IMG/VR virus record: IMGVR_UViG_3300028392_000029
Coordinates: 159,177 to 223,176 of that record
Reading direction: 5' to 3' (one strand)
Length of the DNA: 64,000 nucleotides
In this document: in pieces, positions 44,801-60,979 of the stretch
Layout of the letters: each line of letters starts with the position of its first letter
How positions within the stretch are numbered: position 1 is the first letter of the stretch
The notes under the pieces: model-generated
Told to the model about the DNA's origin: nothing
The model's input: only the letters and a program-made list of their open reading frames with translations
The model's database searches: none
Position numbers and translations under genes: made by a program

Positions 44801-47800
44801 GTGAACGGGCCGGTGCCACTGGCAATATATGTTCCGGTAGGTATACCGGTCCCCACCAACACCATACCAATACTTGGAGCAGTACCTGATACAATAGTTA
44901 ATGTAGTTGTACTTGTAATAGTTCCAACAAACGTTGCACTATTAACAGCAGTAATATAAGTTCCAGTAGTTACTCCAGATCCGGATAATACCATACCGAG
45001 GACAGGAGTGCCAGATGCTACAGTAGTTAAACTTAATGTAGTACCTGTAATCCGTCCAGTAGAACTTAATGTGCTATTAGTAGTTGCAGTAACATTTGAA
45101 TTTGCTCCCGGGTCGGTTGGATACAACAATGACATGGTCACAGTATTTGTACCAGCACTGGCTGTTGTAGCAACGGTAGCTGTTGATGTTAGCACTGGTG
45201 TAAGCAATACGCTACCCAATGCAGGTGTTACTGTAATAATAGGTTGAGAAGTGTATCCGTATCCTGGACTCACTAACACATAGGCTACGATACTACCGTT
45301 GGCAATAGTTACTGTTGCAATGGCTTGACTTGTCGCACCACCGCCTGAGAACACAACGGTTGGAGGATTTGCTGGATCAAATCCACTACCACCATTGGTA
45401 ATTGTAATACTTTGTACGGTAGCTACTAAACTAGAACTTACTATACTGCCCGATGGAATCCAAACAGCAGGAGCCACTGTAAATTTAGTTGTACTATCAA
45501 TACTTTGGATAATAGTTCCACTAGGAACATATGCGCCAGTGCTGGTAGATGATACTACCATGCCTACAGATAAACTAGAAGTAGATGATACTGTTAGTTG
45601 ACTGCTGTTAACAATGCCAGCAATCTGCTTGCTTCCGTTATAACTAGTATTACTGTTATTTGCTATGGTAATATAACTGTCGACCGCAGGTAACTGTGCC
45701 GTCGGACTGTATGGAATATTAAATGTTACAATCTTAGCAGTTGTACTACCTGTTTGCAGTACACTACTAGCATAGGTCATGGAATTGATAACAGTTCCAT
45801 CGGCCGCTAAGTTGCTTATTGGGTTAGGGTCAACACTTAAATATCCGTTGGCTGTAACACCAAATGTAACAGTGCCAGTTGGAGGGTTAACTGTAGCCGC
45901 GCTACTCAAGGTGATTGTTGCTGTATTTACACCACCAGAATTAGATATAACAACAGTTGATACAGTTTGTGTTCCGTTGAATCCTGTACTACTGCCAGTA
46001 CTTGTTAAGATTTGACCTTGACTAATTGTACCTGCAAGACCGTTAACTACTAGTGTATAAGTTGGCCCAGCTGTTACAGTATAGCTTACAAACAACCCTG
46101 TTGAAATAGTCAGTGGCGCAGTATAACTAATAACTCTATGTGTACGACCACCCCAGCCAACTACATAAGTTCCTTTGTTAATTTGATTAATGGTTGATGC
46201 CGAACTAACGGCTAACACAGCAATTTTGTTATCTCCAACCTTACTACCTTGAGTTTTAGTAGCGTCAGTTGGATCCAATTGCGTTATATTATTACCATCG
46301 GTTGTAAATTTATAATAGCTAAAGCTAGCATCAGTTTGTAACACTGATATGTTTGCACCTAAAGTTTCTCCAGTTGCCTCAGTTAACCCATATGCAATTA
46401 CTCGATAAATTTCAGATAAATTGTCAACATACTGTAACGCAGTACTTGGACGTACAGGTTTAACGTTATCAATATTATTGAATTTTATAGCTTGTAATAC
46501 TCTAAAGGTCACAGTTTGACCGTCATATAATGCGTATTGTAGTCCAGTGCTTGAAGTACTGTCAGTGCCTGCGGTACTAAGAGTTACAGATAATATGTTT
46601 TTACCATTGATAGTAACAGTGGTGTGTGCAATTGTTGATATTAGATATCGAACAATGCCGCCACTCTGTACACCGTGATCAATTTCCAGTTCGCTGGCAG
46701 TGTATGGAGCATATGAGTATCCGGTAATGTATAGAGTGACAGACTGTTTAGTTGAAGTTGGAGTCATCTCATTAACAAACAAACCTTGCTTGTATATACG
46801 AGCTACCTGAACCATATCATAGGATAAGTTTACACTATCGGGCAATTCTGTTACGTCGTATCCTGTAGCACGTAAACCATAAACACCGTGTGAGTTAGAA
46901 CCAGCAATACTTCGAACTTGACCGCCATTGTTGGCCCAGTAGCCTGTGTAACAGTAATATGAGAATGTAGATACTTGTTCAGTCAATCCACCGTTGGTTG
47001 CAAATACACCATAACCTAAATCGTTAATTTGTGTAAAGTCGTTAGCCAACATGGACTTATTACCGCCCATTTCAATATTGATACCTAGACCGGCACCACT
47101 GTTTAAGTAGGCAACTGATCCAGATAACAATGTAGATTTCAATCCCTGTAATGTAGTGTAATCACTAGATCTAGTTTGACTTGAATACCATGATTGACTT
47201 GCAGGGGTAGTACGTGTAGTTGGCGTATCAAAATCACCATCTGCAACATAGTCAGTTAGAATTGCAATCTCGGTGTTTACTAATCCTGCTTCAGTTGCGG
47301 TTGCCACAGGCAAACTTATATTTTGAGTATATGGATTACCAGCAGATTTACTTACAGTTTGATTTTGAACAACCTGTTGCATAACAGTATTCAATCGACC
47401 GTATGCCGCAACGCAGTAAGATTCTTCTCCTAAGATTTGACTCACACCGCTGCCGTAATAACTTAGCGATACATCATAGATGGCGCTATTACCACCATAC
47501 ATAATATCGTAACAGATAGCATCAATAATAAATCCTGTATCTCTTTGAGATTTAAGGGCGTTATAATTAGGAATAGTGTTTACGTTATATGTACTAGCAA
47601 TCCAAGCAGACACTTCCTGTTGTAAGAATATTCTGTTAGCTTGTAAAATATTTTTTGCCTTAACAGCATTAGGATTGTTATAAGTACCACCCGGTGTTGG
47701 GAAGGTAGTCGCTGGCACGGTAGTAACACCGTTATTGATCATGTTAGTAATTGTAAGCAAACTTGCCGCAATTGAATTCTTGCCAGTAGTTGATACACTA

Positions 47801-50800
47801 CCTAAATTAGAATTAACATATGCTAGACCTTGAGTTGTAAACAATGTAGCTAAAACAGTTAAACTATTCTGTGGGAACAAATATGTATAACCTGAGAACA
47901 AACTCTTATAGTTAGAACCAGTTACCATGTCTAGACCAATATTGTCTATAACACCACCCAACGCAGTTGTAAATTTAGTTGTGTTGTAAAAATTAGGCGG
48001 ATAGAAAGGTGTACCAGTATCAATTGTTAGCACCACTGTATAGGTTGCCGCATTAAAACTTACAACATCGTTAACTTGGAAGCGATTACCTTGTATATAG
48101 AAAGCGCAAGGAGTTTGTGGAGCACGAATATCAAGTCCGCTGTTAACACTTCCAACAACGGTAATTTGTGTACCATTAACACCTGCAATATTTTGTTCTA
48201 CCCTAGTAATTTTACCAAACAAACGTCCAGTGAATCCATCAATGAATTGACCGCCAGCAAATCGTTTGTAATTGATACTTTGACTAAAGCTACCGCTCTC
48301 TTGAGCATAAGGTGATTTAGTTTTAATTTGTCCTTCTGGATCAAGTACCATGGCAAATCCGCCGTGTCCTTGCATGCTGATCATTCTAACACGAGTAGCA
48401 TCATTACATAAGAACACATCCATTAATCTATTGTTTAGCGGAGTACTATTAATATCTAACGGATCAGTTAAGTAGTGTCTTCCGTAATTAATTGTACTGT
48501 ACAAATGCCAAGCGCCAACAGCATATGTTGTTGCGGCAGCAAAAGGATAAATCACTGTTAAGTTTAACACATTACCACTGATAGTGCTAACAACAGCTTT
48601 ACCCGGAGTTCCGGTACCGCTAGTGCTGTCAGTGAATACTAATCCTAGCCAACTTGCCGGTGCTTGACCAGTACCTAGTGTAGCTGTGATTGATCCTGTT
48701 ATACCGCTGAGTGTAATAGTTGATCCAGTAGTGGCAGCATAATCGGTACCACTATAATCAATAATACCAGTCTGTATGCCGTCAATGACACTGTCTCTAT
48801 AAAAGAACACACTGCGCCATGGGCTTTGACTTACACGATCTAATGGACGTACAATAACACGTCGGAAGTCATCACCAGAAATTGTTACGTTTGCAGATAA
48901 TTTGATTGGGTAATCTTCATAGTAGGTACCGCTTTCAACACAGATAGCAATGTTTTGTTCCGGAACAGTTTCACCGTAGTCTATTTCTTCCCCTACTCTA
49001 AAGAATCCTGGACGAACCATCCTTACTGTGATAGTGTCATATGAAGTAGTTACACCTGGAGTGTATGTTACAATTTGGCCGTATGCATTGCTAGTTCCAC
49101 CGACTAGTATTTTGGCAGGAATAATGTGTACCGCACCTGGTATACCTTGGTCTACAAATCCGTTACCGCCGTTGTCAAATGTAATAGTATACAAGCCCGA
49201 GCCAAATGTAGGGGTTGGAGCCGCACCATATCCATTTGTAATAATACTAATTAAAGTATTCATGTTTGTGGTAAATGTAGTTTTTGCAGGAGTACTTGGC
49301 GACTTTGCAACACCATTCACCGTTGTTTGTTGTCTTACTAGATCTTGGAATCGTGTTTGCTGGGTTTTATTAAGTACCTGAATACCGAGATTTTTAGCAA
49401 ACACAATACCGTCTAATGTTTCACGTAACTGAGATCCAATGGCAATAGCTTTTGCTGATGCATTTTTATAATAGCTTTTACCAGCATTGACGCTTTGATA
49501 AGTTCCGCCTGTTAGTATATCAATAATCATTGCATCAATGATGTATCCAATATCTCGATAACAAGTTGCTTCATTATAATTAAACCCGCCTGGATATGTA
49601 ACAGCGAGGTATGCAGTAGTTGCGTTTCCTATAGTATCTTTACTGTTATTTAAAATTACTTGTGCAGCCTGGGGAATACTTGCATAAATTGTTAAGTCTG
49701 GAAGAGATTGGGTATAGGTTGTATCGTTAGCAACAATATCTGTAACATAATTGAACAATGCATTAATGTCTCCGGCTGCCGCGGCACCGTCAACCCATAC
49801 TGCGTTTCTTACCTGTACAGCACTGTTACCAGTTGCAGGAGTCACTACTGAATTTGACGACACAAGAATAGCAACCGCCTGTGCATGAGTAATTGCTGCC
49901 ACTGTTGCAGTTACTTCATTGCTGGCGATTTGTCTAGTGCCACCGGCCCAATATTGATATGCGGCTCTCAGTGTTGCTGAATTACCACCATATGTTAGAT
50001 CGTAACAGACTGCTTCTAATATAGATTTCACATCTCTACTGCAAGTGGTGTTACTATATACTAAAGATGGGTAATTGGTATTAATCCAAGCAATAGTATC
50101 TGCGGCAATAAAATCAATATTGGCCAATATGGCCGAACGTGCGTGAGCAGTTGTAACTGTTATCGATGGCGGGTCAATAAATGTTGGAACAGACCTACTG
50201 GCAATACCAGCTGTTAATAAGTTAGTAATAATCCCAAACAAACTTGTAATTGTAGAACTGACGGTCACATTATTGATTACTGAGAATGTTGAATTGATAT
50301 AGCTAATCTCAGCTGACTGGATTGCAGATTTCTTCGCAATAATTGCAGTTCTAGCAGTATTCAAAGTAGCACTGGCATTGGCTGTCGTTGGCCCGTACAC
50401 TACTGGATTAGGTGTACTTACACTATTAACGATCCCGGCAATCGTTGCTATGTTGTTTGATATTGATGTGCTGACAATTGTTGAGCCGCCCAATGTTTGA
50501 TTGATATACTGATATACACTCAATTGATACACAGTAGTAGTCGAAACATTATTAATGATCGCTTGACACAATGTATTAATATAATTAATTGCGGCGACGG
50601 TGGCAGTTTTTTCATACTGAGCAATTTGTAAAGTATTGCCTATCCAATATTGAAGTCCAGAGTAAACACTGTTACTGTTACCACCGTACATAAAGTCGTA
50701 GATCAAACTCCATATAATATATTTTACATCTCGCTTACATGTGGCAGAACTGTAGCTTAGTGTTGGATAGTTTGCTAATAAGAAAGCAATAATCTCTGCT

Positions 50801-53667
50801 TGGATAAATGATAGGTTGTTCAGCAACAAATCTCTAGCACTTAGTACACCAGTGTTCGACTGATATGTTTCTATCAAGAATAAAATTACATTTGACTGTA
50901 TAGTTGATAGGCCATTTAAGATAGTTGTTCTTGATGTACCGTTGCTTGCGTAAGTTGTACCAGTGCTGTATATTGGGTTGATAGCAGTAGGCCCTGAAGC
51001 AACACCACCGTTGATAACAGTAATTACAATATTAACTAATGTACTAGCAGCCGCATTAGCAGTTCCGGTTCCTGCGCTTACTGATTGTGTGGTAGTATTG
51101 CCTGTAGTTCTAGTGTATAAATTGCCTTGAATGACTGAAGTCATTACGGCATTTAAGTGCGTATATGCGGCTGTAACTGGAACAAGTTCTGTAGCAATAG
51201 TGTTTACGTTAGTTCCTGTAAAGTATGCATCAGCTGCCGCAATGGTAGCAGTATTACCTCCATAGATCAAGTCAAAGGTTATAGCATCGATAATATATCC
51301 GGTGTCACGTCGACAATTTCCTTCGTTGTATAATGAAATAGTTCCTGGATTCAAGTTAGCATTAATGTATGCAATAGTTTCATCAATTAAAAATTGACGA
51401 TTATTTTGTAATTGTCGGGCGCTGATGTTTACACCAGAAGATGAATTGTTATAAGTCCATGTTACGCTAGGTGCACCGTTAGTACTAACATTGTTAATAA
51501 TAGTTGTGATTACATTCATGCTGGCAGTAATGGCAGCAATGGCAGCGGTATTAGTTGGAATTAATCCAATTACTTCATCTCTAGCTAGATTAATACCAGC
51601 AATGGTTTGAGCCTTTTGGCTTGATGTTACTACAGAACTGTAACTTCTAATGTAGGCAAATGCGGCAGTTATAGAACGATAATTAGTTCCAAAGATCAAA
51701 TCATCTAGTACAGCATTAACAATGATTCCCACGTCTCGACTGCATTTTGCTTGATTAAATGTAAATGTTGAACTAGCATTGGTTGTCGGTAAAGCACCAA
51801 ATACTACGCTAGGCAGACTTCCACCTGAAATAATTTTTTCTATCAATGCAGTATTAGCTTTGATATTGGCAACAGCTGATGGTAAATTTGCAAATGCCGC
51901 ATCTGACACTATGGTATTTGCAAGATCGTTTAGTGTTGCCGCTGCCTGACTTATTCCAGTTGTTTTCACAGACATAATACCAGCATGAGTTGTAACCGCA
52001 AATGGATCGCCCCCGGCTACTAGACTAATTTTAATAGTTGTGCTGTCTACTACACTGTGGATAAAATAAATGGTTCCGATAGTAATATTTCCAAAACCAG
52101 TACCGGAAAATGTAATCGGACTTCCTACCAGCATGCCAACGCTTGAATCTACAGTGATGGTGTTTACAATTGAAGTAGTACCCACAGTAGTAGTATTAAC
52201 AACCGTAGGGGTTGTTTCTAGCCCAGTAGATGCTGTGCTAAATGATAAAGCAACCTGTATACTTCTTAAATTTGAACCAAATATCAAATCATATAACAAT
52301 GCATCAATTACTTGACCTAGATATGTTTGAGTATTAGCGGTACTATACGAGAAATTTAAAACTTGATCTCTAGCATAGTTAACTGCATCGATTATTTGAG
52401 TTAAATTATTTTCAACAATATCTGAGTTATAAGCATTGAATAATATAGATGCTTGAGTTGTGGAATTAAAAGTTGTACCTAATACCGTATCATATCCTAC
52501 AGCATCTACGATATCTGAAATTATACTGCCCCATCTAGCTTTATCAAATGTAAATGTGTTTACATATTTTTTGTTAATGTATGCAATAGTTTCAGCTTGG
52601 ATGAACGATTTGTTTGCTGTTAACAAATCAGCGGCATCAGTATAGCCTATAACTCCGCTATTGCCGCCGCCGAGCGTGACACTTTGAATTGTACTAAAGG
52701 TCTGAGTAGGGCCAACTGTGTAGGCAATTCTTTGACGATATGGGCCAGGTTCTACAGTTGATAGCGCAATAAGATTTTGGGCCTGGAGCGCGGCAGCTCC
52801 AATAGTCTTATAAGCATACGCCCACGAACGACCTTCTCGACCGGGGGGAGTGTTTGTTTGTAAATCGTCACCATTAGTCTTAACATATAGATTTGTCGCG
52901 CTATAGCTAGTATTATTGTCAACATAAAATTTTGTTGCGGCTTGTAGATCATCAGCACCATTAGGTGTACCAAATCCTGCCATTGGTGACGGATGGTCGT
53001 TGAGAGCAAGCGGCCCAGTCATAGTATCGCCGCCACGGTAAACAGTATACTTGCGTTGCATTGCTTCTGTGCTTACATAGTTGCTAGACAATGTTGCGTC
53101 ATAGTCTTTATCACTAGTTTGCGGATTAGCTGGCTCGTCACGGACTCTTAATGCTTTTGAAACTGTGCCGTTATAAGTGGCCACGTAGGTATTATCGGCA
53201 TAATTTTTACTAATTGCCAGCTGTCCTAGAGTGGTAGTAATATTTTGAGAAGCGTACAGAGTATTAAACTGATCAACTAGGGCTTGGCTTGGATCTCCTA
53301 AATTACCAATACTAAATTGATTAGCGTTGATACTGGCACTTAACGATGGTTGCGGGTCGTTGTTTAGTCGAGCACTTAAGGCTGCAATTGTGAGTTTAGT
53401 AGGATCAGAGGTAGTAATACCAATACCTGTTCCAGCTACAATAGTTCTAGCAGATAATGCCCCGCCTGTAGTGTTTGCCATGATAACTTGGTTAGCACTA
53501 TACGTAGATGGTGCATCGGACAAGTTGGTAAATCTGATAGTTCCTCCAGCTCCAAAAATAGCGTATAACTCATTAAAGTTGCTGTTTACTTTTTGGAAAC
53601 TTGTACGGATACTATCGCCAGTTCCGTCATTACCTTGTACGCCAATGTCAATTACTTGTTGTGTCAT
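41863..53667 (-). CDS. Giant (3934 aa) virion structural/tail protein
   Basis: GNDGTGDSIRTSF N-terminus; ATKFYVD; helical CxRD repeats; GHDFLDIGTG; C-terminal YADLAEFY...ALAGRIPC...IEVAVGR. Confidence 0.85.
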   Translation of the reverse strand: MTQQVIDIGVQGNDGTGDSIRTSFQKVNSNFNELYAIFGAGGTIRFTNLSDAPSTYSANQVIMANTTGGALSARTIVAGTGIGITTSDPTKLTIAALSARLNNDPQPSLSASINANQFSIGNLGDPSQALVDQFNTLYASQNITTTLGQLAISKNYADNTYVATYNGTVSKALRVRDEPANPQTSDKDYDATLSSNYVSTEAMQRKYTVYRGGDTMTGPLALNDHPSPMAGFGTPNGADDLQAATKFYVDNNTSYSATNLYVKTNGDDLQTNTPPGREGRSWAYAYKTIGAAALQAQNLIALSTVEPGPYRQRIAYTVGPTQTFSTIQSVTLGGGNSGVIGYTDAADLLTANKSFIQAETIAYINKKYVNTFTFDKARWGSIISDIVDAVGYDTVLGTTFNSTTQASILFNAYNSDIVENNLTQIIDAVNYARDQVLNFSYSTANTQTYLGQVIDALLYDLIFGSNLRSIQVALSFSTASTGLETTPTVVNTTTVGTTSIVNTITVDSSVGMLVGSPITFSGTGFGNITIGTIYFIHSVVDSTTIKISLVAGGDPFAVTTHAGIMSVKTTGISQAAATLNDLANTIVSDAAFANLPSAVANIKANTALIEKIISGGSLPSVVFGALPTTNASSTFTFNQAKCSRDVGIIVNAVLDDLIFGTNYRSITAAFAYIRSYSSVVTSSQKAQTIAGINLARDEVIGLIPTNTAAIAAITASMNVITTIINNVSTNGAPSVTWTYNNSSSGVNISARQLQNNRQFLIDETIAYINANLNPGTISLYNEGNCRRDTGYIIDAITFDLIYGGNTATIAAADAYFTGTNVNTIATELVPVTAAYTHLNAVMTSVIQGNLYTRTTGNTTTQSVSAGTGTANAAASTLVNIVITVINGGVASGPTAINPIYSTGTTYASNGTSRTTILNGLSTIQSNVILFLIETYQSNTGVLSARDLLLNNLSFIQAEIIAFLLANYPTLSYSSATCKRDVKYIIWSLIYDFMYGGNSNSVYSGLQYWIGNTLQIAQYEKTATVAAINYINTLCQAIINNVSTTTVYQLSVYQYINQTLGGSTIVSTSISNNIATIAGIVNSVSTPNPVVYGPTTANASATLNTARTAIIAKKSAIQSAEISYINSTFSVINNVTVSSTITSLFGIITNLLTAGIASRSVPTFIDPPSITVTTAHARSAILANIDFIAADTIAWINTNYPSLVYSNTTCSRDVKSILEAVCYDLTYGGNSATLRAAYQYWAGGTRQIASNEVTATVAAITHAQAVAILVSSNSVVTPATGNSAVQVRNAVWVDGAAAAGDINALFNYVTDIVANDTTYTQSLPDLTIYASIPQAAQVILNNSKDTIGNATTAYLAVTYPGGFNYNEATCYRDIGYIIDAMIIDILTGGTYQSVNAGKSYYKNASAKAIAIGSQLRETLDGIVFAKNLGIQVLNKTQQTRFQDLVRQQTTVNGVAKSPSTPAKTTFTTNMNTLISIITNGYGAAPTPTFGSGLYTITFDNGGNGFVDQGIPGAVHIIPAKILVGGTSNAYGQIVTYTPGVTTSYDTITVRMVRPGFFRVGEEIDYGETVPEQNIAICVESGTYYEDYPIKLSANVTISGDDFRRVIVRPLDRVSQSPWRSVFFYRDSVIDGIQTGIIDYSGTDYAATTGSTITLSGITGSITATLGTGQAPASWLGLVFTDSTSGTGTPGKAVVSTISGNVLNLTVIYPFAAATTYAVGAWHLYSTINYGRHYLTDPLDINSTPLNNRLMDVFLCNDATRVRMISMQGHGGFAMVLDPEGQIKTKSPYAQESGSFSQSINYKRFAGGQFIDGFTGRLFGKITRVEQNIAGVNGTQITVVGSVNSGLDIRAPQTPCAFYIQGNRFQVNDVVSFNAATYTVVLTIDTGTPFYPPNFYNTTKFTTALGGVIDNIGLDMVTGSNYKSLFSGYTYLFPQNSLTVLATLFTTQGLAYVNSNLGSVSTTGKNSIAASLLTITNMINNGVTTVPATTFPTPGGTYNNPNAVKAKNILQANRIFLQQEVSAWIASTYNVNTIPNYNALKSQRDTGFIIDAICYDIMYGGNSAIYDVSLSYYGSGVSQILGEESYCVAAYGRLNTVMQQVVQNQTVSKSAGNPYTQNISLPVATATEAGLVNTEIAILTDYVADGDFDTPTTRTTPASQSWYSSQTRSSDYTTLQGLKSTLLSGSVAYLNSGAGLGINIEMGGNKSMLANDFTQINDLGYGVFATNGGLTEQVSTFSYYCYTGYWANNGGQVRSIAGSNSHGVYGLRATGYDVTELPDSVNLSYDMVQVARIYKQGLFVNEMTPTSTKQSVTLYITGYSYAPYTASELEIDHGVQSGGIVRYLISTIAHTTVTINGKNILSVTLSTAGTDSTSSTGLQYALYDGQTVTFRVLQAIKFNNIDNVKPVRPSTALQYVDNLSEIYRVIAYGLTEATGETLGANISVLQTDASFSYYKFTTDGNNITQLDPTDATKTQGSKVGDNKIAVLAVSSASTINQINKGTYVVGWGGRTHRVISYTAPLTISTGLFVSYTVTAGPTYTLVVNGLAGTISQGQILTSTGSSTGFNGTQTVSTVVISNSGGVNTATITLSSAATVNPPTGTVTFGVTANGYLSVDPNPISNLAADGTVINSMTYASSVLQTGSTTAKIVTFNIPYSPTAQLPAVDSYITIANNSNTSYNGSKQIAGIVNSSQLTVSSTSSLSVGMVVSSTSTGAYVPSGTIIQSIDSTTKFTVAPAVWIPSGSIVSSSLVATVQSITITNGGSGFDPANPPTVVFSGGGATSQAIATVTIANGSIVAYVLVSPGYGYTSQPIITVTPALGSVLLTPVLTSTATVATTASAGTNTVTMSLLYPTDPGANSNVTATTNSTLSSTGRITGTTLSLTTVASGTPVLGMVLSGSGVTTGTYITAVNSATFVGTITSTTTLTIVSGTAPSIGMVLVGTGIPTGTYIASGTGPFTLSGAATNGINIGIVGTSYTVSASQTVSSTSISGLANLLTVASATGLNAGQQITFSGSAFGTGTILTPVNGVSPNTLYYINKVAGTSIGIATSLGGSDITVSSGSVSVGTLLSLYSPNYGYGTSLAVDASTGFTSKTIIGTGPTYSVVLNFATTTAPVTGSYYLVSGNNNPLYNGFYLCSASSATTITLTYPQDPGTWSTAFNTTVTLEVTSGSSNTLGIGRPFSTLTSATLRLGRPAGSAAQITTRISTCRATGHDFLDIGTGGYVTTNYPVQIYGNPAIQSNGSNQVKEETVGRVFYVTTDENGIFRVGRFFSVDQGTGTVTFSASIALSNLDGLGFKRGVVVTQFSTDPTMTDNAPDIVPVQSATRSFIDNRLGLDYGGSPVATTSLIGPGYLALNGTLAMKGNLNLGNFSIGNLTMPSTSTSKYDGANRDYVDQSLIALNSIFKLLDVGIAAGRGLYLSGSSISYVLTVNNISGSITSGLAVYGTGFDGTQIVQSVSISGAGVATITLGTYPNSNPSGTIFFLNAVSSGSFLVYDVGLGKWKNVAAPTGDLSITYNSGTGTIVTNLNAGAIVNADVNASAAIAQSKLAMTAATTRANYTGIAQADLGIASFNSSSFSSTNGWIDLLTSTSAITGITYSKIQQMSVGTVLGNLTASAASPSEVTPTQILNAAGGISNGSFGASGAMVVGYDGSNSANNSYTVVGITSTRGANQILKTGVDGSADVANLKVGGFTVLSTSGTTVQHSTPGGIVQATPFYYMTAVGTTGSNTTITTQGTLNTSNGTLVATTFTAGAPATGGSMEGQWYLTASSQFDFSLGILKSNNLTAGSSTAAGTIDGNWSLTTGSQLRSTYADLAEFYEGDQEYPEGWVLVFGGDKEVTSTTTFNDTRLAGVVTTNPAYVMNEGQQGIKVCLALAGRIPCRVVGRVKKGDLLTTSAVEGCAVKSTNPQIGSIIGKAIQDKDYDSVGVIEVAVGRS

Positions 53668-53997: not shown

Positions 53998-54009
53998 GAT
54001 AGCCCTCGA

Positions 54010-54051
54010 TTGAGTATTTATCCAATATATTTTATAACCTTAATGTAAATA
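54010..54051. promoter_or_regulatory. Back-to-back TAAATA late promoters (erpA and the 54057 ORF)
   Basis: Minus strand TGGATAAATACTCAA (54010-54024); plus strand TAAATA at 54046-54051, 5 nt before ATG. Confidence 0.6.
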
Positions 54052-54056
54052 CAGTT

Positions 54057-54344
54057 ATGTATATTGGAACTGAATTTCGAGAAAACCACTATGTGCGCAC
54101 CAGCAATCGTGGTAAGACACACACCTATAGTCGTAAAAAAACCGTACTGGTATTACGGTGTGATTGCTGTGGAGAAGTATTTAATCGAGACAAGGGCAAT
54201 ATGGACCCTAATCGATTAAGCAACAACTATTATCATGTGTGTGGTAATTGTGATGCTAAAAAGTTTGCTCAAAGCAAAGGGATTGAAAGTAAGCATGTTT
54301 GGGACATGCCTGTAAGCAGTCTTAAGACGCTAGGCCAACTCTAG
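54057..54344 (+). CDS. Small Zn-ribbon protein
   Basis: CDCC...HVCGNC; leaderless after TAAATA. Confidence 0.7.
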   Translation: MYIGTEFRENHYVRTSNRGKTHTYSRKKTVLVLRCDCCGEVFNRDKGNMDPNRLSNNYYHVCGNCDAKKFAQSKGIESKHVWDMPVSSLKTLGQL

Positions 54345-54882
54345 CACTGATTACATTCCAGTTGATAATTTTCCACTGATTAGATAGATAGCTTTTTTTA
54401 TCGGCTTGGTAGTCTAGAGCCCAGGCATGCTCCCACCAATCTACCAGCAATACAATATCCTGTCTGATTTCGTGATTTTTGATAGTCTTAATTTTTCCGT
54501 CACGAGCCAAATACACCCATCCTGAACCTTGGATTTTCATAGCTTCTTTTTCAAAGGCATCAATAAACTTATCAAAATTTTTAAAGTGTTTATCGATAAA
54601 TTCACCGGACGACCCGCTAGGCTCGTTTGATCTTGTAGGTTTCTGAAATTGCGTAAAGTATATATTATGCAAAAAAGCCCCAGCTTCGTTGAAGTCAGGA
54701 TCCCCTTCTCCTTTATTAAAACGCTTAACATATCCGCCGTACAGTTCACTATAGTGATAGTCTATGGTTTCTTCACTCATGCTGGGTTCTAAATCATCTC
54801 TTGCATAGGGCAACTTGGTATGAACCAACGTCTTGGGGGTTTTACCCTCGTTCAGCGTGATGTGTTTAATAAAGTTGTACAT
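54322..54882 (-). CDS. sod: Fe/Mn superoxide dismutase
   Basis: LPY...LEP, YHY, LHNIYF, GSGW, DWWEHAW (His, His, Asp, His metal ligands). Confidence 0.9.
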   Translation of the reverse strand: MYNFIKHITLNEGKTPKTLVHTKLPYARDDLEPSMSEETIDYHYSELYGGYVKRFNKGEGDPDFNEAGAFLHNIYFTQFQKPTRSNEPSGSSGEFIDKHFKNFDKFIDAFEKEAMKIQGSGWVYLARDGKIKTIKNHEIRQDIVLLVDWWEHAWALDYQADKKSYLSNQWKIINWNVISARVGLAS

Positions 54883-54887
54883 AATGG

Positions 54888-54905
54888 TATTTATCAGTAT
54901 AAATA
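54888..54905. promoter_or_regulatory. Back-to-back late promoters (sod and the 54925 ORF)
   Basis: Minus strand TAAATA at 54888-54893, 5 nt before the sod ATG; plus strand TATAAATA at 54898-54905 (T4 late consensus). Confidence 0.65.
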
Positions 54906-54924
54906 CTCTGGAGGATAATATACC

Positions 54925-55188
54925 ATGTTAAAATTTATCAAAAGTTTTTTTAAGAAATCAGATCCAGTAGTGGCAGAGCCAGTTCCATATAAAGTCGAAG
55001 TTGCTCCGGTAGCAGAACTAGCACCAGTTGCTGTTCAAGCTGTAGAAGCAATGGTAGAGTCTATTATGCCAGCTGGGACAGAAGCATCAATGGCCGCACC
55101 TGTTACTAAATCTAAGAAAGCACCTGCGGCTAAGAAAGCACCAGCCGCAAAAAAGCCACGTGCTCCTAAAAAGCCTAAAGCAGAGTAA
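54925..55188 (+). CDS. Small protein with an amphipathic N-terminus and a histone-like KKAPAA tail
   Basis: GGAGG SD; MLKFIKSFF...KKAPAAKKAPAAKKPR. Confidence 0.75.
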   Translation: MLKFIKSFFKKSDPVVAEPVPYKVEVAPVAELAPVAVQAVEAMVESIMPAGTEASMAAPVTKSKKAPAAKKAPAAKKPRAPKKPKAE

Positions 55189-56200
55189 GTCGTTTAGCTT
55201 GCTCGTATAAGGCAAAACTTGCAAGATTTTTGCCTTTGCTTTCACACATAATATCGTGTGTGCTTAGAAAGCTCAGTGCCCATTCATTAACTTTTGTATT
55301 CCAATAAAAGTCTGAATGTGCTCTGAGCTTTTGCTTTTTGTATCCTGTTTCAAGTAACGCCGAGTGATTTGGGATTATATCAGTGTCATGATCCACAAGA
55401 TAGTCTTCACGAGATACTGAATAATGCATAGTAGGGCGCAGACCGCGCCAACTGTCCACGACACGCATAACACGGCTATCTGTGTTGCTGATGTATTGCC
55501 CTTCACGTATCCAGTGATGGTGTACGTCAAGCACAATAGGAATGATATCGCTAATAGTAAGACAGTCATCTAGCCCCCATGAGTTTTCTTCGTTTTCGAT
55601 TGTAATTGTATTTCGAGCTTCAGGTGATAGTCGCTGGTAAGCCCTGCGTATGCCTTCGGGGCCTTGGCGGCCTGATATGTGTACATTAATTTTAATGTCT
55701 TGGAAAGATTTACCATAGCCCATATATCGTGCCATGTCTGCGTGATATTCAAATTCTTCTATACTGCGCTGAACAATACCTTCATTATCACTAGCCAACA
55801 CAGTAAACTGGCCAGGATGAAAACTAAGGCGGACGTTGCGATCCTTAGCAATTCGACCAACGGTTCCAAACTGTTTTTCGCAATATTCAACCACATCGCT
55901 ACGTTGCCAAAAATAAGACCAGTCAGCGTGAGTATACACAGGCAGGATATCACTACTAATACGTACCATACGAAGGTTATCATCTAAATCTCCTACTCTC
56001 TCTACAAGTTTGCGGGTGGATTCGATGTTCTGAACCATTAGGTCCCATAGTTTTTGTTCTGCCACTTCTTTAGTTTGGCGTCGAAGCCAGCTGACAGTTG
56101 TACTACCGGTGTTATACTGTTTAGCATCATCTTTTGTATTAATGCCATTAACTTGATCTGCATGATCGATCCATTTACATGCGAAGCCTATACGTTTCAT
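55175..56200 (-). CDS. uvsE: UV damage endonuclease UvsE/UVDE
   Basis: RIGFACK, RISSDILP, HPGQF, NVHISG, IENEE, LDVHHH, HSD, MCESKGK; start set at MKRIGF. Confidence 0.92.
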   Translation of the reverse strand: MKRIGFACKWIDHADQVNGINTKDDAKQYNTGSTTVSWLRRQTKEVAEQKLWDLMVQNIESTRKLVERVGDLDDNLRMVRISSDILPVYTHADWSYFWQRSDVVEYCEKQFGTVGRIAKDRNVRLSFHPGQFTVLASDNEGIVQRSIEEFEYHADMARYMGYGKSFQDIKINVHISGRQGPEGIRRAYQRLSPEARNTITIENEENSWGLDDCLTISDIIPIVLDVHHHWIREGQYISNTDSRVMRVVDSWRGLRPTMHYSVSREDYLVDHDTDIIPNHSALLETGYKKQKLRAHSDFYWNTKVNEWALSFLSTHDIMCESKGKNLASFALYEQAKRLTLL

Positions 56201-56370
56201 TACCAATGCCTTATGACGCTTGCGATTATAAAAATGTTTGTAAGTACATATGATAACACAATTACAGCACGAATGCAAGCAATTCGATCCGATTCCTCGT
56301 CCGTACTGCCTGATTTTTCACCTAATGATTTTGCCCAAAGTCGCCAAAAATTACGGAAGTAAGTTCCCAT
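56200..56370 (-). CDS. Small membrane protein (56 aa; missed by the ORF track)
   Basis: MGTYFRNFWRLWAKSLGEKSG...IRAVIVLSYVLTNIFIIASVIRHW*; TAATG coupling to uvsE. Confidence 0.7.
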   Translation of the reverse strand: MGTYFRNFWRLWAKSLGEKSGSTDEESDRIACIRAVIVLSYVLTNIFIIASVIRHW

Positions 56371-57148
56371 TAGTCTTCTGCCAAATTCCTGTATGGATTA
56401 AGAGATCTTTGTGCCAACCTGGTATATTTTCCCAATAATGATGTTCATACCCATTATGCCCCTTTGTTACAAAATGGTCTTTATAAGACATTCTGATAAT
56501 AGTCTTAAATTTGGAATTCAGTAATTCTAAAGGATTATCGATGTCGATAATCGGGTGAAGAAATAATAATCCGTTATTGGCTAGCATATCATTAACTTTG
56601 TCAACGTACTTACTTAATGGATAATGCCACCCCCACGAAGCGCATGATATGACCAAGTTGACCGGAATTTGACTCCACACGGGTTGTTTATAATCTACAT
56701 TTATAAAATGAGATTGTGTACACCCATTAAGATTGATACATCTATATACCTGATCCCAATTGTTGTAAGGTGCATGATCTAACGAGTACATAGTGTTCGA
56801 ATTATCATTTACCTCGTTACCATCAACTAGCATAAATCTAGCATTGTTTATATTTTTTGATTGAAAAAATTTGTAAAGAATGATGTCGAAAATACTATTT
56901 CCGCATCCAACATCAAGAACAACGATTTGCTTATTTTGATCTGCAAAATTTTTAAAATATTCTAATACCTTCGGAGTTAACAAATCTTTTAATTTAGATG
57001 AATACCTATCTGATAACTCTTTTAGATATATATCGGGACTTAATCCGACCATTCCGTTTTGAATTAAAAGCATATCAATAAAATCCCCATCCGGTAGGAA
57101 TATGTCTATAGTTCCGTTGTTGGGTGTTTCAATTGCCAGTCTATTCAT
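56351..57148 (-). CDS. Class I SAM-dependent methyltransferase
   Basis: VLDVGCGNS, LVDG, LVISCASWGWHYP; start set at MNRLAI. Confidence 0.75.
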   Translation of the reverse strand: MNRLAIETPNNGTIDIFLPDGDFIDMLLIQNGMVGLSPDIYLKELSDRYSSKLKDLLTPKVLEYFKNFADQNKQIVVLDVGCGNSIFDIILYKFFQSKNINNARFMLVDGNEVNDNSNTMYSLDHAPYNNWDQVYRCINLNGCTQSHFINVDYKQPVWSQIPVNLVISCASWGWHYPLSKYVDKVNDMLANNGLLFLHPIIDIDNPLELLNSKFKTIIRMSYKDHFVTKGHNGYEHHYWENIPGWHKDLLIHTGIWQKTNGNLLP

Positions 57149-57158
57149 AATTTTATTT

Positions 57159-57608
57159 TTAGCCTTCGTATGTAGCCGAGTTAGCACCATGTTCTGCACA
57201 TTCTACCCTTACACAATAGCAACGATTATTAGTCTTTTCTCTTATTAATTGATCAGCAAAATTAAAAGCATGTTCAGCAAACTTCTCTGCACCTACGCCA
57301 TCAAAGATGCGAATCTCTGCTAGACCTAACATTTCCAATTCTAAAAACTTTGACAAATATGGATCACTTTTATCCAATGCTAGTTTGTGATCAAAGTGAT
57401 CTTCCAGCCATGCCTTGAGCAACTTAAGACCGCCAAAGTCTACTGCCCAGTTTTTATTGTCTAATGTTTCACAACCAAAGGTAAACGTAAATGCTAGACT
57501 ATAACCATGTAGCAAATGACAGTGACTGTGATCTGCGTTTGGTTGACGGAATACAGCACTTAGTCCAATGTTGTGTCCATAGTGTTTTGTTGAGTAAAAT
57601 TTTGCCAT
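57159..57608 (-). CDS. queD: 6-carboxy-5,6,7,8-tetrahydropterin synthase
   Basis: HCHLLHGYS, WAVDFGGLK, FDHKL, GAEKFAE, VECAEHGANSA. Confidence 0.88.
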   Translation of the reverse strand: MAKFYSTKHYGHNIGLSAVFRQPNADHSHCHLLHGYSLAFTFTFGCETLDNKNWAVDFGGLKLLKAWLEDHFDHKLALDKSDPYLSKFLELEMLGLAEIRIFDGVGAEKFAEHAFNFADQLIREKTNNRCYCVRVECAEHGANSATYEG

Positions 57609-57675
57609 TGTTATCTCCTAAGATTAAGCAATGGCATGCAGAGTTTATATTGCGGGATGAATGCCTAAGTCCGCA
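57603..57675 (-). ncRNA. Candidate riboswitch-like pseudoknot leader of queD
   Basis: P1 UGCGG/CCGCA; loop GGCAU pairs with downstream AUGCC across an A-rich linker; competing SD/start-sequestering hairpin. Confidence 0.5.
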
Positions 57676-57682
57676 TAGTATA

Positions 57683-57710
57683 ATTATACACTTTTATGCG
57701 TCTAGGTCAA
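57683..57710 (-). promoter_or_regulatory. sigma70-type promoter of queD (TTGACC-N16-TATAAT)
   Basis: Places the transcription start just before the P1 stem. Confidence 0.7.
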
Positions 57711-57712
57711 GT

Positions 57713-59734
57713 TTATTGATTAGCAATCATGCCAAACCCTAACCATTGACCAGGATTGCCAGACACTGTGCATACCCAGCCAACATAGCTGTTTGCTCTT
57801 GGCTCAGTATTCCAGCAGACATCACCTGCATTGTAAGTTCCTACTGTTGGAAAACTTGTATTATTTGTGAATCGTTTATTGCCAATACTAACATCACCGT
57901 TGACAGCAAAACTTAAACTTGGATCTGGATTATTAACCCCTACAGTCAGTGCTCCGAAAACCTTAACAGTTTTACGTGTGTTAGATTTATCACCTAGTAC
58001 AATCTGTGTTGAATCACTACTAAGTACATTTGACTGCTGATTAGTGATTGATACTACTCCACCGAAGTTAATGTTAGCTGTAGTAATATCTATACTGTTT
58101 GTGCCGTCATTTAGTAGTAGTGACTTAACTTTAACATTACCCTGGCTTGCATCGATGTCATCTAAAAATGTACTATGTCCCGATACTGATAATGAATTTA
58201 ATGTTCCAAGAGCAGTTAAGTTACTATTAACAATACTAGATCCTAACCCTGTGGCAGTGACAGCAACTCTGCTGCCAATGTAATAGCTTTGATCAGCATG
58301 CAGATCTATACTTTCACTGCTGTATAACCTGTCAGGGCCAGCCATCATAATCAACTGTCTTGGCGCACCCGTACCAGACCATACCAAACCTAGACCGTAT
58401 ATGCTAGTATCTGTAGTTGCTTGGAATTGCATTGGACTTGTTCGGTCTATTCTAGTGTCAGCCACTAGATTGCTAACATGCAATGTACCATAAATATTCA
58501 CCACAGCATTTTGACCAGCGGCGTTACCAAAGTTTACTTCTCCGCTATTCTTTACAGTGATACGTGCAATATTGTCTGTAGTAATTTCGAGATCGTGATT
58601 ACTGTGTGTTCCAATAGAGGCTACATTAGTTCTCTGACTCCCGATACCGATTTCAACATTGTTATCAACAATACTGAAACTAGCATTAGGCTCGTCAGTG
58701 CCAATACCAATTCTGTTGTATGTACTATTAATAAAGACAAACTCTCCAAGGGCAGTATCGCCTGATACTGACAAACTTTCCAAAGTTCCAACAGTTTTTA
58801 AATTACTATTAACAATAGTGGATCCTAAAGTACCATTGGATAGTACTGGTACATTGTCGATCCTAAAACTAGAGTTTACATCTAAGTCTAAATGGCTGTT
58901 AGTCCACAATCTAGAACCGTTTCGATATACTAGCATGTTGTCGCTAGTACCAGTTACCCAATGTATGCCCTGTCCGTTTAATTGTTGTTCAGTGTTGGCA
59001 GTAAAGTTTCCTAACTCAAAAGCCGCACCCGATTCAGTAATTACTTGACTAGCTTTAATTGTTTGAGCAGTTAGAGTGCCGGTAATTGTAACAGGGCCGT
59101 CAATCTCAACCGAGTTATTGAATTTAGTAAGTCCGTTAATTTCAGTAAGTCCGTCTACTGTTAACGACTGTAATCGACCTAGGGTTTTTAAATTACTACT
59201 AGTAACTCCTGTACCTAGTGCCGTATGCGATAGTACAGGTGAGCCACTGATGTGATAGCTTTGGTCTACACCCAAATCTATTTCTAGAGTAGATGCTAGT
59301 CGACCATTTCTGTAAAGTAATGAACTAACGACAGTTGGTCCAACTTTCCAAACAAGCCCCTTTCCATTTAAATCAGCATTTTGCATGCCTGTGAATGTTA
59401 ACGGCTCTCTAGTTTCTTGTGTTACATCTGCGATTAAGTTAGCAACGGTAATTGTATTTGCACTAATATTACCAGATATGATTAAATCTTTAAGAAATCT
59501 TGTATCTTCCGAAACACTAATAGTGCCGTCAACTGTTAAGTTTCCAGCAACTTGTACGTTTCCGTCTAGCTTCTTTGTTCTAATGGTGTCAACAGTAGCC
59601 ATACCGTTAGAAACAATAAGACTAGTTTGACCAGCTAGATCTTGTATGCCGGTACTTTGGAATTGCGTGATTACGCCGCCGGAAACCTTGTTTCCACTTA
59701 TAGAACCGTCTGGTATAATTGTATTGTCAGCCAT
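57713..59734 (-). CDS. Virion structural protein with three internal repeats
   Basis: Three copies of G-x-x-W...LD(L/H)...(VLS/AVT)xxxLG-x3-x(S/N)SNL-x3-G-x-L; late promoter upstream. Confidence 0.65.
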   Translation of the reverse strand: MADNTIIPDGSISGNKVSGGVITQFQSTGIQDLAGQTSLIVSNGMATVDTIRTKKLDGNVQVAGNLTVDGTISVSEDTRFLKDLIISGNISANTITVANLIADVTQETREPLTFTGMQNADLNGKGLVWKVGPTVVSSLLYRNGRLASTLEIDLGVDQSYHISGSPVLSHTALGTGVTSSNLKTLGRLQSLTVDGLTEINGLTKFNNSVEIDGPVTITGTLTAQTIKASQVITESGAAFELGNFTANTEQQLNGQGIHWVTGTSDNMLVYRNGSRLWTNSHLDLDVNSSFRIDNVPVLSNGTLGSTIVNSNLKTVGTLESLSVSGDTALGEFVFINSTYNRIGIGTDEPNASFSIVDNNVEIGIGSQRTNVASIGTHSNHDLEITTDNIARITVKNSGEVNFGNAAGQNAVVNIYGTLHVSNLVADTRIDRTSPMQFQATTDTSIYGLGLVWSGTGAPRQLIMMAGPDRLYSSESIDLHADQSYYIGSRVAVTATGLGSSIVNSNLTALGTLNSLSVSGHSTFLDDIDASQGNVKVKSLLLNDGTNSIDITTANINFGGVVSITNQQSNVLSSDSTQIVLGDKSNTRKTVKVFGALTVGVNNPDPSLSFAVNGDVSIGNKRFTNNTSFPTVGTYNAGDVCWNTEPRANSYVGWVCTVSGNPGQWLGFGMIANQ

Positions 59735-59750
59735 GGATAAACACTCTCTT

Positions 59751-59765
59751 TTGAGTATTTATCCA
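59751..59765 (-). promoter_or_regulatory. Late promoter TGGATAAATACTCAA
   Basis: 15-nt identity with 54010-54024. Confidence 0.65.
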
Positions 59766-59776
59766 CGGACTGGTGC

Positions 59777-60979
59777 TTAACTAGATGCTTTAAGAATAAT
59801 GATTTCTTCGTTTAAACGACCATTTAGGCGTGTATCAGTAGCATTGATATCGTCTAAGAACTTACGTAACTGCACCTTACCTGCCGCTTTGAACTCTTTA
59901 AGTTTCTCTTCGGGCTTGCGTAGTGTTTTCTGGACACTAGTAGACTCGTTGAAGTTAACAATACTTGCACCCTTAACACCTAGTTCTTTGTACTCTTCTG
60001 CAATATAGCGTCCGAGCTTTCGGCTCTTAGTGTTGTAAGTCCATACTTCCTTAGCACCGATGATGTCTGTAGGATTAATACTAACAAGTTTTAAAGGTTC
60101 GCAAGATTTCATGTACTTGAGTTTAGCAACAATCTTTTCTTTAGGCTGTGCCTTTTTAGCACGTGGAGCGCGATTAACCTTAGCCTCTTGTGCTAACATA
60201 TCACATGCACTTGCAATTTCTTGATAGAACGCAATTAGACTGCGAATTTGCTTTTTAGTACGATGGCTGTATGCTTCTTTCAATTGCTCGTCACCGTTAC
60301 CACTAGCAAGTTCTTCTAGCTCGGCTAGATCTCTAGCATATAGGTTTTTAATAATACGAGCATGTGCGGCTTTGACTTCTTTGCCTTTGAGCAAGTTCAA
60401 AACCTTAAATGCTTTTGGATCAAACGACTCTGGATCGTTTTGAAAACCTTCGATAGCATCCTCTAATTCTTCAGTCATGCGGAACGAAGCTTCACGAACC
60501 CGATCCTGTATACTAGGTTGCGGAATTACAGGCTTGGCTGCTTCAGCGGCCTTTGCTTCATCTTCGTCAACATCATTTTTACCATCAGCGATAACCTTGA
60601 CAATCTCTGCTCGCAACCAAGCACTAGTATCTCGCCCGTCATTAAAATCTGCGCGAACTGCTGGCATCCCACGAAGTAAACAGCTGGCAATAGCACCCAT
60701 GGTTGAGTTACAACGATTGTCTTTAGTTTTCTTAAAGGCGGCAATGTCTTCCTTAGTGCAACCCACAGTAGCCATCCATTTAAGCACAGCAGGCTTCAAA
60801 TCTTTGCCGTTGAATTCTAAGCGATAGTATTCCATAGCATGATGCCAGTGACGCAAAAATTGCGAAGCGTCCATAGACTCTACATTATCCCAAACTGGGC
60901 TATGATCTTTAGCCGCTTTGGTGCGATGAGCAGTTACCTGCTTTTTGGTAACTCTAGTTTTGGTTGCCACTTTAGCCAT
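59777..60979 (-). CDS. Conserved phage hypothetical protein (400 aa, early promoter)
   Basis: AGGAG SD; C-terminal KTLRKPEE...NGRLNEEIIILK. Confidence 0.8.
   Translation of the reverse strand: MAKVATKTRVTKKQVTAHRTKAAKDHSPVWDNVESMDASQFLRHWHHAMEYYRLEFNGKDLKPAVLKWMATVGCTKEDIAAFKKTKDNRCNSTMGAIASCLLRGMPAVRADFNDGRDTSAWLRAEIVKVIADGKNDVDEDEAKAAEAAKPVIPQPSIQDRVREASFRMTEELEDAIEGFQNDPESFDPKAFKVLNLLKGKEVKAAHARIIKNLYARDLAELEELASGNGDEQLKEAYSHRTKKQIRSLIAFYQEIASACDMLAQEAKVNRAPRAKKAQPKEKIVAKLKYMKSCEPLKLVSINPTDIIGAKEVWTYNTKSRKLGRYIAEEYKELGVKGASIVNFNESTSVQKTLRKPEEKLKEFKAAGKVQLRKFLDDINATDTRLNGRLNEEIIILKASS

Follow-up and report, generated by a model that had tools for sequence, protein, structure and literature searches.

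A conserved, covarying pseudoknot in the leader of phage queD as a candidate translational ON switch

The queD locus and its leader

The stretch of DNA analysed here (64,000 nt, positions 159,177 to 223,176 of IMG/VR record IMGVR_UViG_3300028392_000029; hereafter, the window) carries on its minus strand the gene queD (57608-57159), encoding a 149-aa QueD-like 6-carboxytetrahydropterin synthase of the PTPS family, and the 5' leader of this gene contains a small H-type pseudoknot followed by a hairpin that draws on some of the same letters. We call this arrangement the phage queD leader motif and regard it, from comparison of the window with related phage loci, as probably a previously undescribed cis-regulatory RNA in which a ligand-stabilized pseudoknot would turn the regulated gene, queD, on. 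All features of the leader described below lie on the minus strand.

The leader is preceded by a sigma-70-type promoter (57710-57683) made of TTGACC (57710-57705), a 16-nt spacer and TATAAT (57688-57683), which matches the consensus at 11 of 12 letters and is the top site in the 6 kb scanned (54000-60000). The same TTGACC and TATAAT boxes, at equal spacing, are kept in relatives of the same type (L004, L008, L011, L018 and L046). The start of transcription is predicted at about 57676, some 7 nt past the -10 box and directly before the first helix of the pseudoknot (0-2 nt). On its 5' side, TTGACC directly follows the stop codon of a gene (57713-59734, minus strand) for a 673-aa tail-fibre-like protein.

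The whole aptamer-like pseudoknot spans 43 nt (57633-57675) and consists of two helices, P1 and P2, and three loops, L1 to L3. P1 pairs UGCGG (57675-57671) with CCGCA (57655-57651), and P2 pairs GGCAU (57665-57661) with AUGCC (57637-57633). L1 (ACUUA, 57670-57666) separates the 5' strands of the two helices, L2 (UCAUC, 57660-57656) leads from P2 to the 3' strand of P1 and provides C57659 and A57658 for the contacts with L3, and L3 (AUAUAAACUCUGC, 57650-57638) is A-rich in its first half and then runs into a near-invariant UCUGC. Each letter quoted in the initial annotation, which had read a 5-bp P1, a GGCAU/AUGCC P2 and an A-rich linker as an H-type pseudoknot, is present on the minus strand.

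The UGCC of the P2 3' strand also opens a second structure, the sequestor hairpin (57636-57603), in which UGCCAUUG (57636-57629) pairs with CAAUGGCA (57610-57603) and an inner helix is formed by AUCU and AGAU. The queD start codon AUG (57608-57606) falls inside the sequestor stem, and the Shine-Dalgarno (SD) sequence AGGAG (57619-57615) lies partly in its loop. This hairpin had been described as burying both the SD and the AUG; in the predicted fold the AUG is fully buried (unpaired probability 0.00), whereas the SD is buried only in part (0.62 unpaired).

In a DNA run that is likely the source of the window, the segment comprising the leader and the 5' end of queD (57505-57671) had a summed contig depth of about 232, compared with about 16 in its flanks, which suggests that many co-occurring relatives carry a near-identical copy of it.

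Covariation, conserved letters and linkage to queD

The evidence for the pseudoknot comes from its relatives. A QueD-anchored set was assembled from IMG/VR with the best 80 of more than 597 loci by QueD protein (83-100% amino-acid identity, contigs of up to 357 kb), and the 130 nt located 5' of queD in these loci displayed a common architecture with visible compensating changes. In alignment A1, a plain MAFFT alignment of 53 distinct aptamer sequences produced with no structure fitting, 87.0% of the P1 and P2 cells held standard pairs, as against 65.3% when partners were shuffled (0/500). Sliding the partners by 1-3 columns made the pairing drop to 42-54%, and the range over all slid controls was 35-54%. 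The covariation score of A1 was 0.516 versus 0.175 in the control, with double-sided changes in 8 of the 10 pairs, and in a model-fitted alignment 90.6% of the P1 and P2 cells paired.

A protein-independent set was obtained by scanning the DNA of IMG/VR with a pattern of the conserved core alone, which yielded at least 120 matches, from which 80 loci were taken. Its 73 distinct sequences, likewise in a model-fitted alignment, gave a P1 and P2 pairing of 91.8% compared with 69.8% after shuffling (0/500), and 9 of the 10 pairs showed double changes. P1 is paired in 94-98% of cells, its three outer pairs covary (C-G/A-U/U-A, G-C/C-G/A-U and A-U/U-A), and the same helix was predicted independently by RNAalifold. 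All five P2 pairs change on both sides, the variants including GGCAU/AUGCC, GACGC/GUGUC, ACGAC/GUCGU, GGUG/CACC, GAUG/CAUC and AACG/CGUU, and when the P2 tails were swapped among sequences the observed complementarity was reached in 0 of 2000 permutations. G-U pairs are common in the helices, and their tolerance indicates that the constraint acts on the minus strand as RNA. Conservation and covariation of P1 and P2, set beforehand as the test on which the proposed structure should stand or fall, were thus clearly found across the phage leaders, and we hold with high confidence that the motif is a conserved structure with a cis-regulatory role.

Besides the helices, twelve letters are invariant in A1 (G57672, G57671, C57669, U57668, C57656, C57655, C57654, A57644, U57642, C57641, G57639 and C57638). 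They are located at the helix junctions and in the loops, where the consensus reads GG/NCU, UCA-N-C/CC and A-rich-UCUGC. L1 opens with A, C or U, each about equally often, and its next two letters (C and U) are invariant, while the letter before C57656 is U, A or C, usually U. Lengths vary as well, with an L1 of 3-11 nt and a P2 of 4-7 bp among the relatives.

A mutual-information scan revealed that C57659 in L2 and G57639 in L3 are paired in 56 of 56 distinct sequences; the adjacent A57658-U57640 combination is A-U in 53 of them and G-C in three (L007, L010 and L056), with no exceptions. These two pairs form a 2-bp L2-L3 lock that closes the pseudoknot fold. In addition, the middle pair of P1, C57673-G57653, co-varies with positions 4 and 6 of L3 (57647 and 57645). 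Where the middle pair is C-G, position 4 is a pyrimidine (73/75) and position 6 an A (75/75), and where it is A-U or U-A, position 4 is an A (39/39); this could reflect a base triple, with L3 lying in the groove of P1, or a clade effect. A short variant (the L051 and L061-L080 type, for example L051:2939-2980) has a P1 of 3-4 bp and a 10-nt L3 (CUAAUUCUGC), keeps the invariant loop letters unchanged and is preceded, 10-20 nt upstream, by a strong TTGACA/TATAAT promoter.

The motif is closely tied to one gene. Model R1, which was built on A1, found the leader as its sole match in the 64-kb window (60.5 bits, E = 1e-10) and, in 77 of the 80 QueD-anchored loci, returned a single match located immediately 5' of queD. 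A further 80 loci were collected through a QueE-like radical-SAM protein whose gene comes after queD in some relatives, and in this QueE-anchored set the motif was present in 27 loci, in every case (27/27) directly before a QueD homologue, which was often about 40% identical to the window protein and belonged to a second QueD subfamily. Eight QueE-anchored loci have queD with no motif detected, and there the gene order is mostly queE then queD. Among the matches listed by the pattern scan, all 80 loci scored 33-64 bits under R1 and all 80 have a QueD homologue (30-90% identity) within 700 nt downstream. Within the window and the anchored loci, no motif was found directly before queE or folE, and no second copy elsewhere.

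Meanwhile, the genes that flank the motif and queD vary, with tail-fibre-like, MptE-like, 2OG oxygenase, KdsA, aldolase, UvdE, BioC-like methyltransferase, PsiE and sugar epimerase genes among them, and such wide differences indicate that the motif travels with queD and nothing else. In locus L220 it has a cytidylyltransferase gene on its 5' side and queD on its 3' side and is about 900 nt past folE. A particular arrangement was seen in L041 (2744-2794) and L281 (169-219), where the QueD-homologous part begins about 200 nt downstream of the motif and the open reading frame (ORF) starting right after the motif is fused in frame to QueD, giving a 208-aa protein with an N-terminal extension.

Outside these viral contigs, a pattern that was too loose returned from bacterial and archaeal genome contigs 80 loci, among the matches listed, in which P1 was rarely complementary and the scores, at most 24.7 bits, were chance-like. 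In cultured phages no DNA match to the region was found, and blastn with a consensus-like leader gave chance matches only. So far, the motif is known only from uncultured phage contigs, with well over a hundred distinct representatives.

Expression platform, pathway and proposed mechanism

Downstream of the pseudoknot, 58 of 60 distinct full leaders contain a contiguous helix of at least 6 bp that joins a segment opening at or inside the P2 3' strand to the ribosome-binding region, and the strand overlapping the P2 3' strand has the AUG as its partner in 41 leaders and the SD in 14. When the upstream segment was shuffled, such a helix was found in about 14 of the 60 leaders, with a maximum of 22 over 200 shuffles. 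The P2 3' strand lies 20-45 nt upstream of the AUG, and at least three platform designs occur, namely UGCCAUUG/CAAUGGCA together with longer versions of it, (C)CUAUG/CAUAG(G), which takes up the GG of the SD, and GUCAUC/GAUGGC. Changes next to the AUG are matched by changes in the paired letters, as in AACAAUGGCA/UGCCAUUGUU, AAGAUGGCA/UGUCAUCUU, UAAUAAUGG/CCAUUAUUA and UUAUGGGU/GCCCAUAA.

In the window, the predicted energies are -11.5 kcal/mol for the sequestor and -5.3 kcal/mol for the P2 duplex, and the predicted unpaired probability of the AUG rises from 0.00 to 0.71 once the P2 strands are held. Either fold precludes the other, since some letters belong to both P2 and the sequestor. The ON-switch logic that had been read from the single leader is therefore upheld by a P2 3' strand shared with a covarying AUG/SD sequestor throughout the 58 leaders, and a mutually exclusive two-state design in which pseudoknot formation corresponds to the ON state is likely. 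The CUCU of L3 was also considered as a general anti-SD and was rejected, as it cannot nest with the observed sequestor; its conservation is accounted for by the L2-L3 covariation.

The commonest platform is not that of the window and is found in L005, L007, L026, L050 and most loci of alignment A3 (for example, L226:1087-1110). In these, the hairpin that sequesters the SD has a loop with the DNA sequence TGCTATAAT(T/C/A)AAC, which corresponds to an extended -10 box and is near-constant even at about 40% QueD identity. It could be an internal promoter for transcripts devoid of the aptamer, or a part of the switch.

QueD of the window matches Pfam PTPS (6e-14) and NCBIfam QueD (3e-8, under the curated cut-off) and is 46-53% identical to phage proteins annotated as QueD; no sequence match was found in the PDB. 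A tblastn search of the window with QueE, QueC, FolE and DpdA of phage RHEph04 found only queD, with no folE, queE, queC or dpdA, and neither dpdA nor queC was found within 10 kb of queD in relatives of the L220/L410 type. Some relatives carry a QueE-like radical-SAM gene directly after queD, and FolE is encoded near queD in some. The gene order in L220 and L410 is GIY-YIG, FolE, R67-type dihydrofolate reductase (DHFR), a small ORF, cytidylyltransferase, motif, queD and queE, the R67-type enzyme after FolE being a 63-aa protein of Pfam family DHFR_2 (L410:8363-9231; L220:881-1561). The presence of FolE and an R67-type DHFR beside the motif, queD and queE ties the locus to pterin and folate metabolism. 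Judged by gene position, the motif appears to gate the committed step after FolE and not folE itself. The product of the pathway may serve DNA modification, tRNA queuosine or another end.

The window belongs to a large freshwater phage with a genome of at least 223 kb, and it encodes a family-B DNA polymerase, a large AAA+ protease, virion proteins and a 3934-aa ORF. Ten nucleotides past the queD stop codon starts a gene for a 265-aa protein (56351-57148, minus strand) that is weakly BioC- or methyltransferase-like (NCBIfam 7e-7, Pfam below cut-off). In a DNA contig from the likely source sample, position 56346 is joined to 57158 and this gene is skipped, which indicates that it is present or absent among co-occurring relatives. 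Just 3' of queD, the segment 54322-56278 (minus strand) and its neighbours encode a UvdE UV-endonuclease (2e-43) and an Fe/Mn superoxide dismutase (1e-22), and in a related contig an Fe-S biogenesis protein is found among the stress and repair genes at this side of queD. Farther away, the 3934-aa protein is encoded by a single ORF (41863-53667, minus strand) with no Pfam family, adjoining virion-structural-like ORFs of 904-1397 aa, and a ClpB/Lon-like protease of 757 aa is located at 19490-21763.

Based on these features, we propose that the pseudoknot of about 43 nt, being at the extreme 5' end of the queD mRNA, would be made first during transcription, and that a small metabolite would stabilize it while nascent, such that P2 holds the anti-AUG/anti-SD strand and queD translation is on. 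Without the ligand, the stabler sequestor would form and bury the start codon, or the SD in other phages, so that translation would be off. The switch is probably under kinetic control.

We favour a small molecule as the ligand, with somewhat better than even confidence, on the basis of the pocket-like conservation, the constancy of the RNA before two QueD subfamilies and the lack of a constant neighbour gene. The RNA is near-constant while QueD drifts to about 40% identity, which agrees better with a small ligand that does not change than with a protein partner that evolves along with the RNA, and the ON wiring makes a precursor or supply signal likelier than the end product preQ1. One may guess that the ligand presents a guanine- or pterin-like 2-amino-4-oxo face, with which the invariant C preceding the 3' strand of P1 would interact; candidate ligands, again as guesses, are dihydroneopterin triphosphate (the FolE product), a related pterin or folate, and guanine or GTP. 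We tentatively put forward, with a confidence a little short of even, a new phage-specific riboswitch class in which a 43-nt pseudoknot aptamer senses a pterin or 7-deazapurine metabolite (for example, dihydroneopterin triphosphate or CDG/preQ0) and turns QueD on.

Several points weigh against a ligand-driven ON switch and the structure on which it is built. The leader sequence of the window, taken alone, folds no better than chance (z = -1.58; 15 of 200 shuffles fold as well), which makes the single-sequence observation indistinguishable from chance and leaves the decision to the comparison of relatives. In that comparison, the shuffle controls disregard the relatedness of the sequences, which the slid controls do not, and the pattern-selected set has several loop letters fixed by construction, so that loop conservation rests only on the QueD- and QueE-anchored sets. 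The isolates closest by QueD, namely Acidovorax phage ACP17, Xanthomonas phage X1, Synechococcus phage BUCT-ZZ01 and Rhizobium phage RHEph04, gave no model match (0/4); in ACP17, X1 and BUCT-ZZ01, queD overlaps or abuts the upstream gene. Three lake metatranscriptomes, in which the contigs of relatives were thin and scattered, yielded no start site. The sequestor is about 6 kcal/mol stabler than P2 alone, which requires either a kinetic switch or a large gain from ligand or tertiary contacts. Finally, ON switches are seldom seen on biosynthetic genes, which makes the ligand guess weak, and all known preQ1 riboswitches are OFF switches (PMC11625349).

Among the alternatives, the motif could be a very divergent preQ1-I riboswitch ("type IV") that recognizes preQ1 or preQ0 by means of the cytosine preceding the 3' strand of P1 and exerts end-product feedback or ligand-induced activation, for instance coupling phage synthesis to host preQ1. 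The common topology, the invariant G-C pair closing a 5-bp P1, the invariant C that usually follows a U (as in type I), the A-rich L3 and the short P2 all agree with it, as does the common pathway, que genes being preQ1-I targets (PMC11625349; PMC10622847). We nevertheless consider it unlikely, since the Rfam preQ1 models gave no match, be it at E<=10 on two stretches of 96-116 nt or at the gathering threshold on 20 loci, the letter after P1 is variable and not a conserved U, and a 13-nt L3 with an invariant UCUGC and an L2-L3 lock is missing from the family consensus. Moreover, the SD lies outside the P2 3' strand, and the ON wiring is opposed to the known OFF switches.

The pseudoknot could also be a protein operator, bound by QueD or by another phage or host protein that shifts the balance between pseudoknot and sequestor, resulting in autogenous translational control. 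Pseudoknots at the 5' end of mRNAs are classic operators, the phage T4 gene 32 leader being a precedent for autogenous translational control of this kind; the motif strictly accompanies one gene, and its conserved loop letters may form a protein-binding face. However, the RNA hardly changes before two QueD subfamilies that share only about 40% identity, the neighbourhood holds no other constant gene, and the small size with conservation centred on the junctions is typical of metabolite pockets, which together render an operator rather improbable.

A device that needs no ligand would account for a thermodynamically favoured sequestor, a pseudoknot that is transcribed first and the conservation of both folds, whether it acts as a kinetic timer that allows a burst of translation before refolding to the sequestor, as a thermosensor or as a 5' protection against mRNA decay. 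It would leave the strict tie to one metabolic gene unexplained, and the twelve invariant unpaired letters and the covarying L2-L3 lock exceed the needs of a simple competing helix; we therefore give this possibility a small chance as well. Lastly, it is scarcely credible that the motif has no function and that its pairings are due to chance and its conservation to recent shared ancestry or to signals in the DNA, for instance a promoter. Although the single-sequence fold is not significant and promoter-like boxes are present in and near the leader, two-sided compensating changes occur in 8-9 of the 10 pairs, pairing drops to 35-54% in slid controls, the G-U pairs are strand-specific, and the motif persists before QueD down to 30-40% identity while flanking genes differ.

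Should the pseudoknot bind a metabolite, as the proposed ON switch assumes, it would constitute a new riboswitch class found so far only in phage contigs, which is a rarity. To the structural solutions of this pathway it would add a fourth, and the first of ON type; among riboswitch classes, it would be the first known solely from viruses. Phages would then own metabolite sensors that gate an auxiliary metabolic pathway, in contrast to fixed early and late gene programmes, and large freshwater phages in particular would gain metabolite-gated control over the supply of 7-deazaguanine. Given the ON wiring and a gene for the enzyme that follows FolE at the committed step, the molecule sensed may be an intermediate of the pathway, possibly one with no known natural RNA sensor (neopterin, CPH4 or CDG). 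The aptamer would also provide a new element for biosensing and a handle on the timing of phage 7-deazaguanine synthesis for DNA or tRNA modification, as well as a 43-nt model of a preQ1-I-like fold rewired from OFF to ON by moving the regulatory overlap from the SD to the anti-start strand. Even without a ligand, a covarying two-state leader tied strictly to one gene in highly divergent phages represents a clean system of translational control in uncultured viruses.

Comparison with known RNAs

Searches against Rfam 15 (4227 models) gave no relevant match at E<=10 for the window (57585-57700) or for L014 (2915-3010), and no match at the gathering threshold on 20 diverse loci. The only matches, to mir-875, a snoRNA and a PyrC leader, had E values of 2-8 and were rejected as irrelevant. 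The comparison with the Rfam preQ1 models that the initial annotation had called for thus places the leader outside known families, and the preQ1-I-like build lacking GGUUC that it had described holds up. Full-text searching of the literature found no description of the motif.

The closest likeness is to the preQ1-I riboswitches (RF00522). Members of this family are recognized by an H-type pseudoknot whose 5-bp P1 is closed by a conserved G, by a specificity cytosine that follows a U or A and lies immediately 5' of the P1 3' strand, by a conserved U or UU opening L1, by an A-rich L3 and by concealment of the SD in P2; they control que genes (PMC11625349; PMC10622847). The queD motif shares with them the H-type pseudoknot with a covarying 5-bp P1 and a short P2, an invariant G57671 closing P1, an invariant C57656 directly 5' of the P1 3' strand, an L2 between the P2 5' and P1 3' strands and an A-rich L3, and it likewise lies in the leader of a queuosine/7-deazaguanine gene and is predicted to act on translation. 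It differs in its L1, which consists of N-C-U plus 0-8 nt instead of the U, UU or UUC of the family and does not show the L1 uridine, and in its L3, which at 13 nt, or 10 nt in the short variant, is longer than the roughly 6-8 nt of the family and carries an invariant UCUGC and the L2-L3 lock. Furthermore, its P2 3' strand overlaps the anti-AUG/anti-SD strand and not the SD, the predicted outcome is ON versus OFF, and its occurrences to date are all in contigs of uncultured phages and all precede queD. On account of the variable first L1 letter, the long L3 with its lock and the opposite logic, we do not class the queD motif with preQ1-I; it behaves like a relative of the preQ1-I fold, to which it may be distantly akin or on which it may have converged.

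The preQ1-II and preQ1-III riboswitches (RF01054, RF02680) serve the same pathway with pseudoknotted aptamers and translational control. They are HLout pseudoknots of about 80-100 nt located before queT and found in Bacillota or gut metagenomes only (PMC11625349), whereas the queD motif has 43 nt, is followed by queD and has no Rfam match. The THF-II riboswitch (folE motif) is a small leader RNA that senses the pterin ring in early pterin metabolism (PMC6800512). Control of an early pterin step is a shared trait, and FolE adjoins the queD motif in some phages; in contrast, THF-II is a simple hairpin with an internal loop that acts as an OFF switch before folE in bacteria, and Rfam indicates no similarity between the two.

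The switching logic proposed here has its counterpart in the Vibrio add adenine riboswitch, in which the ligand-stabilized aptamer captures a strand that would otherwise sequester the SD or AUG, turning translation on. The capture of an anti-SD/anti-AUG strand is the same in both, the aptamers being a purine-class three-way junction in add and a pseudoknot in the queD motif, with the P2 3' strand as the shared strand. In phages, the T4 gene 32 leader carries a 5'-end H-type pseudoknot that nucleates the cooperative binding of its own single-strand-binding protein. Both are phage mRNAs with a 5'-end H-type pseudoknot governing translation of the downstream gene, but the gene 32 leader is not known to have an alternative sequestor sharing a strand with the pseudoknot, and its gene does not encode a metabolic enzyme. 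In line with riboswitches in general, the queD leader combines a covarying aptamer tied to a gene of one pathway with a platform pairing that excludes part of that aptamer.

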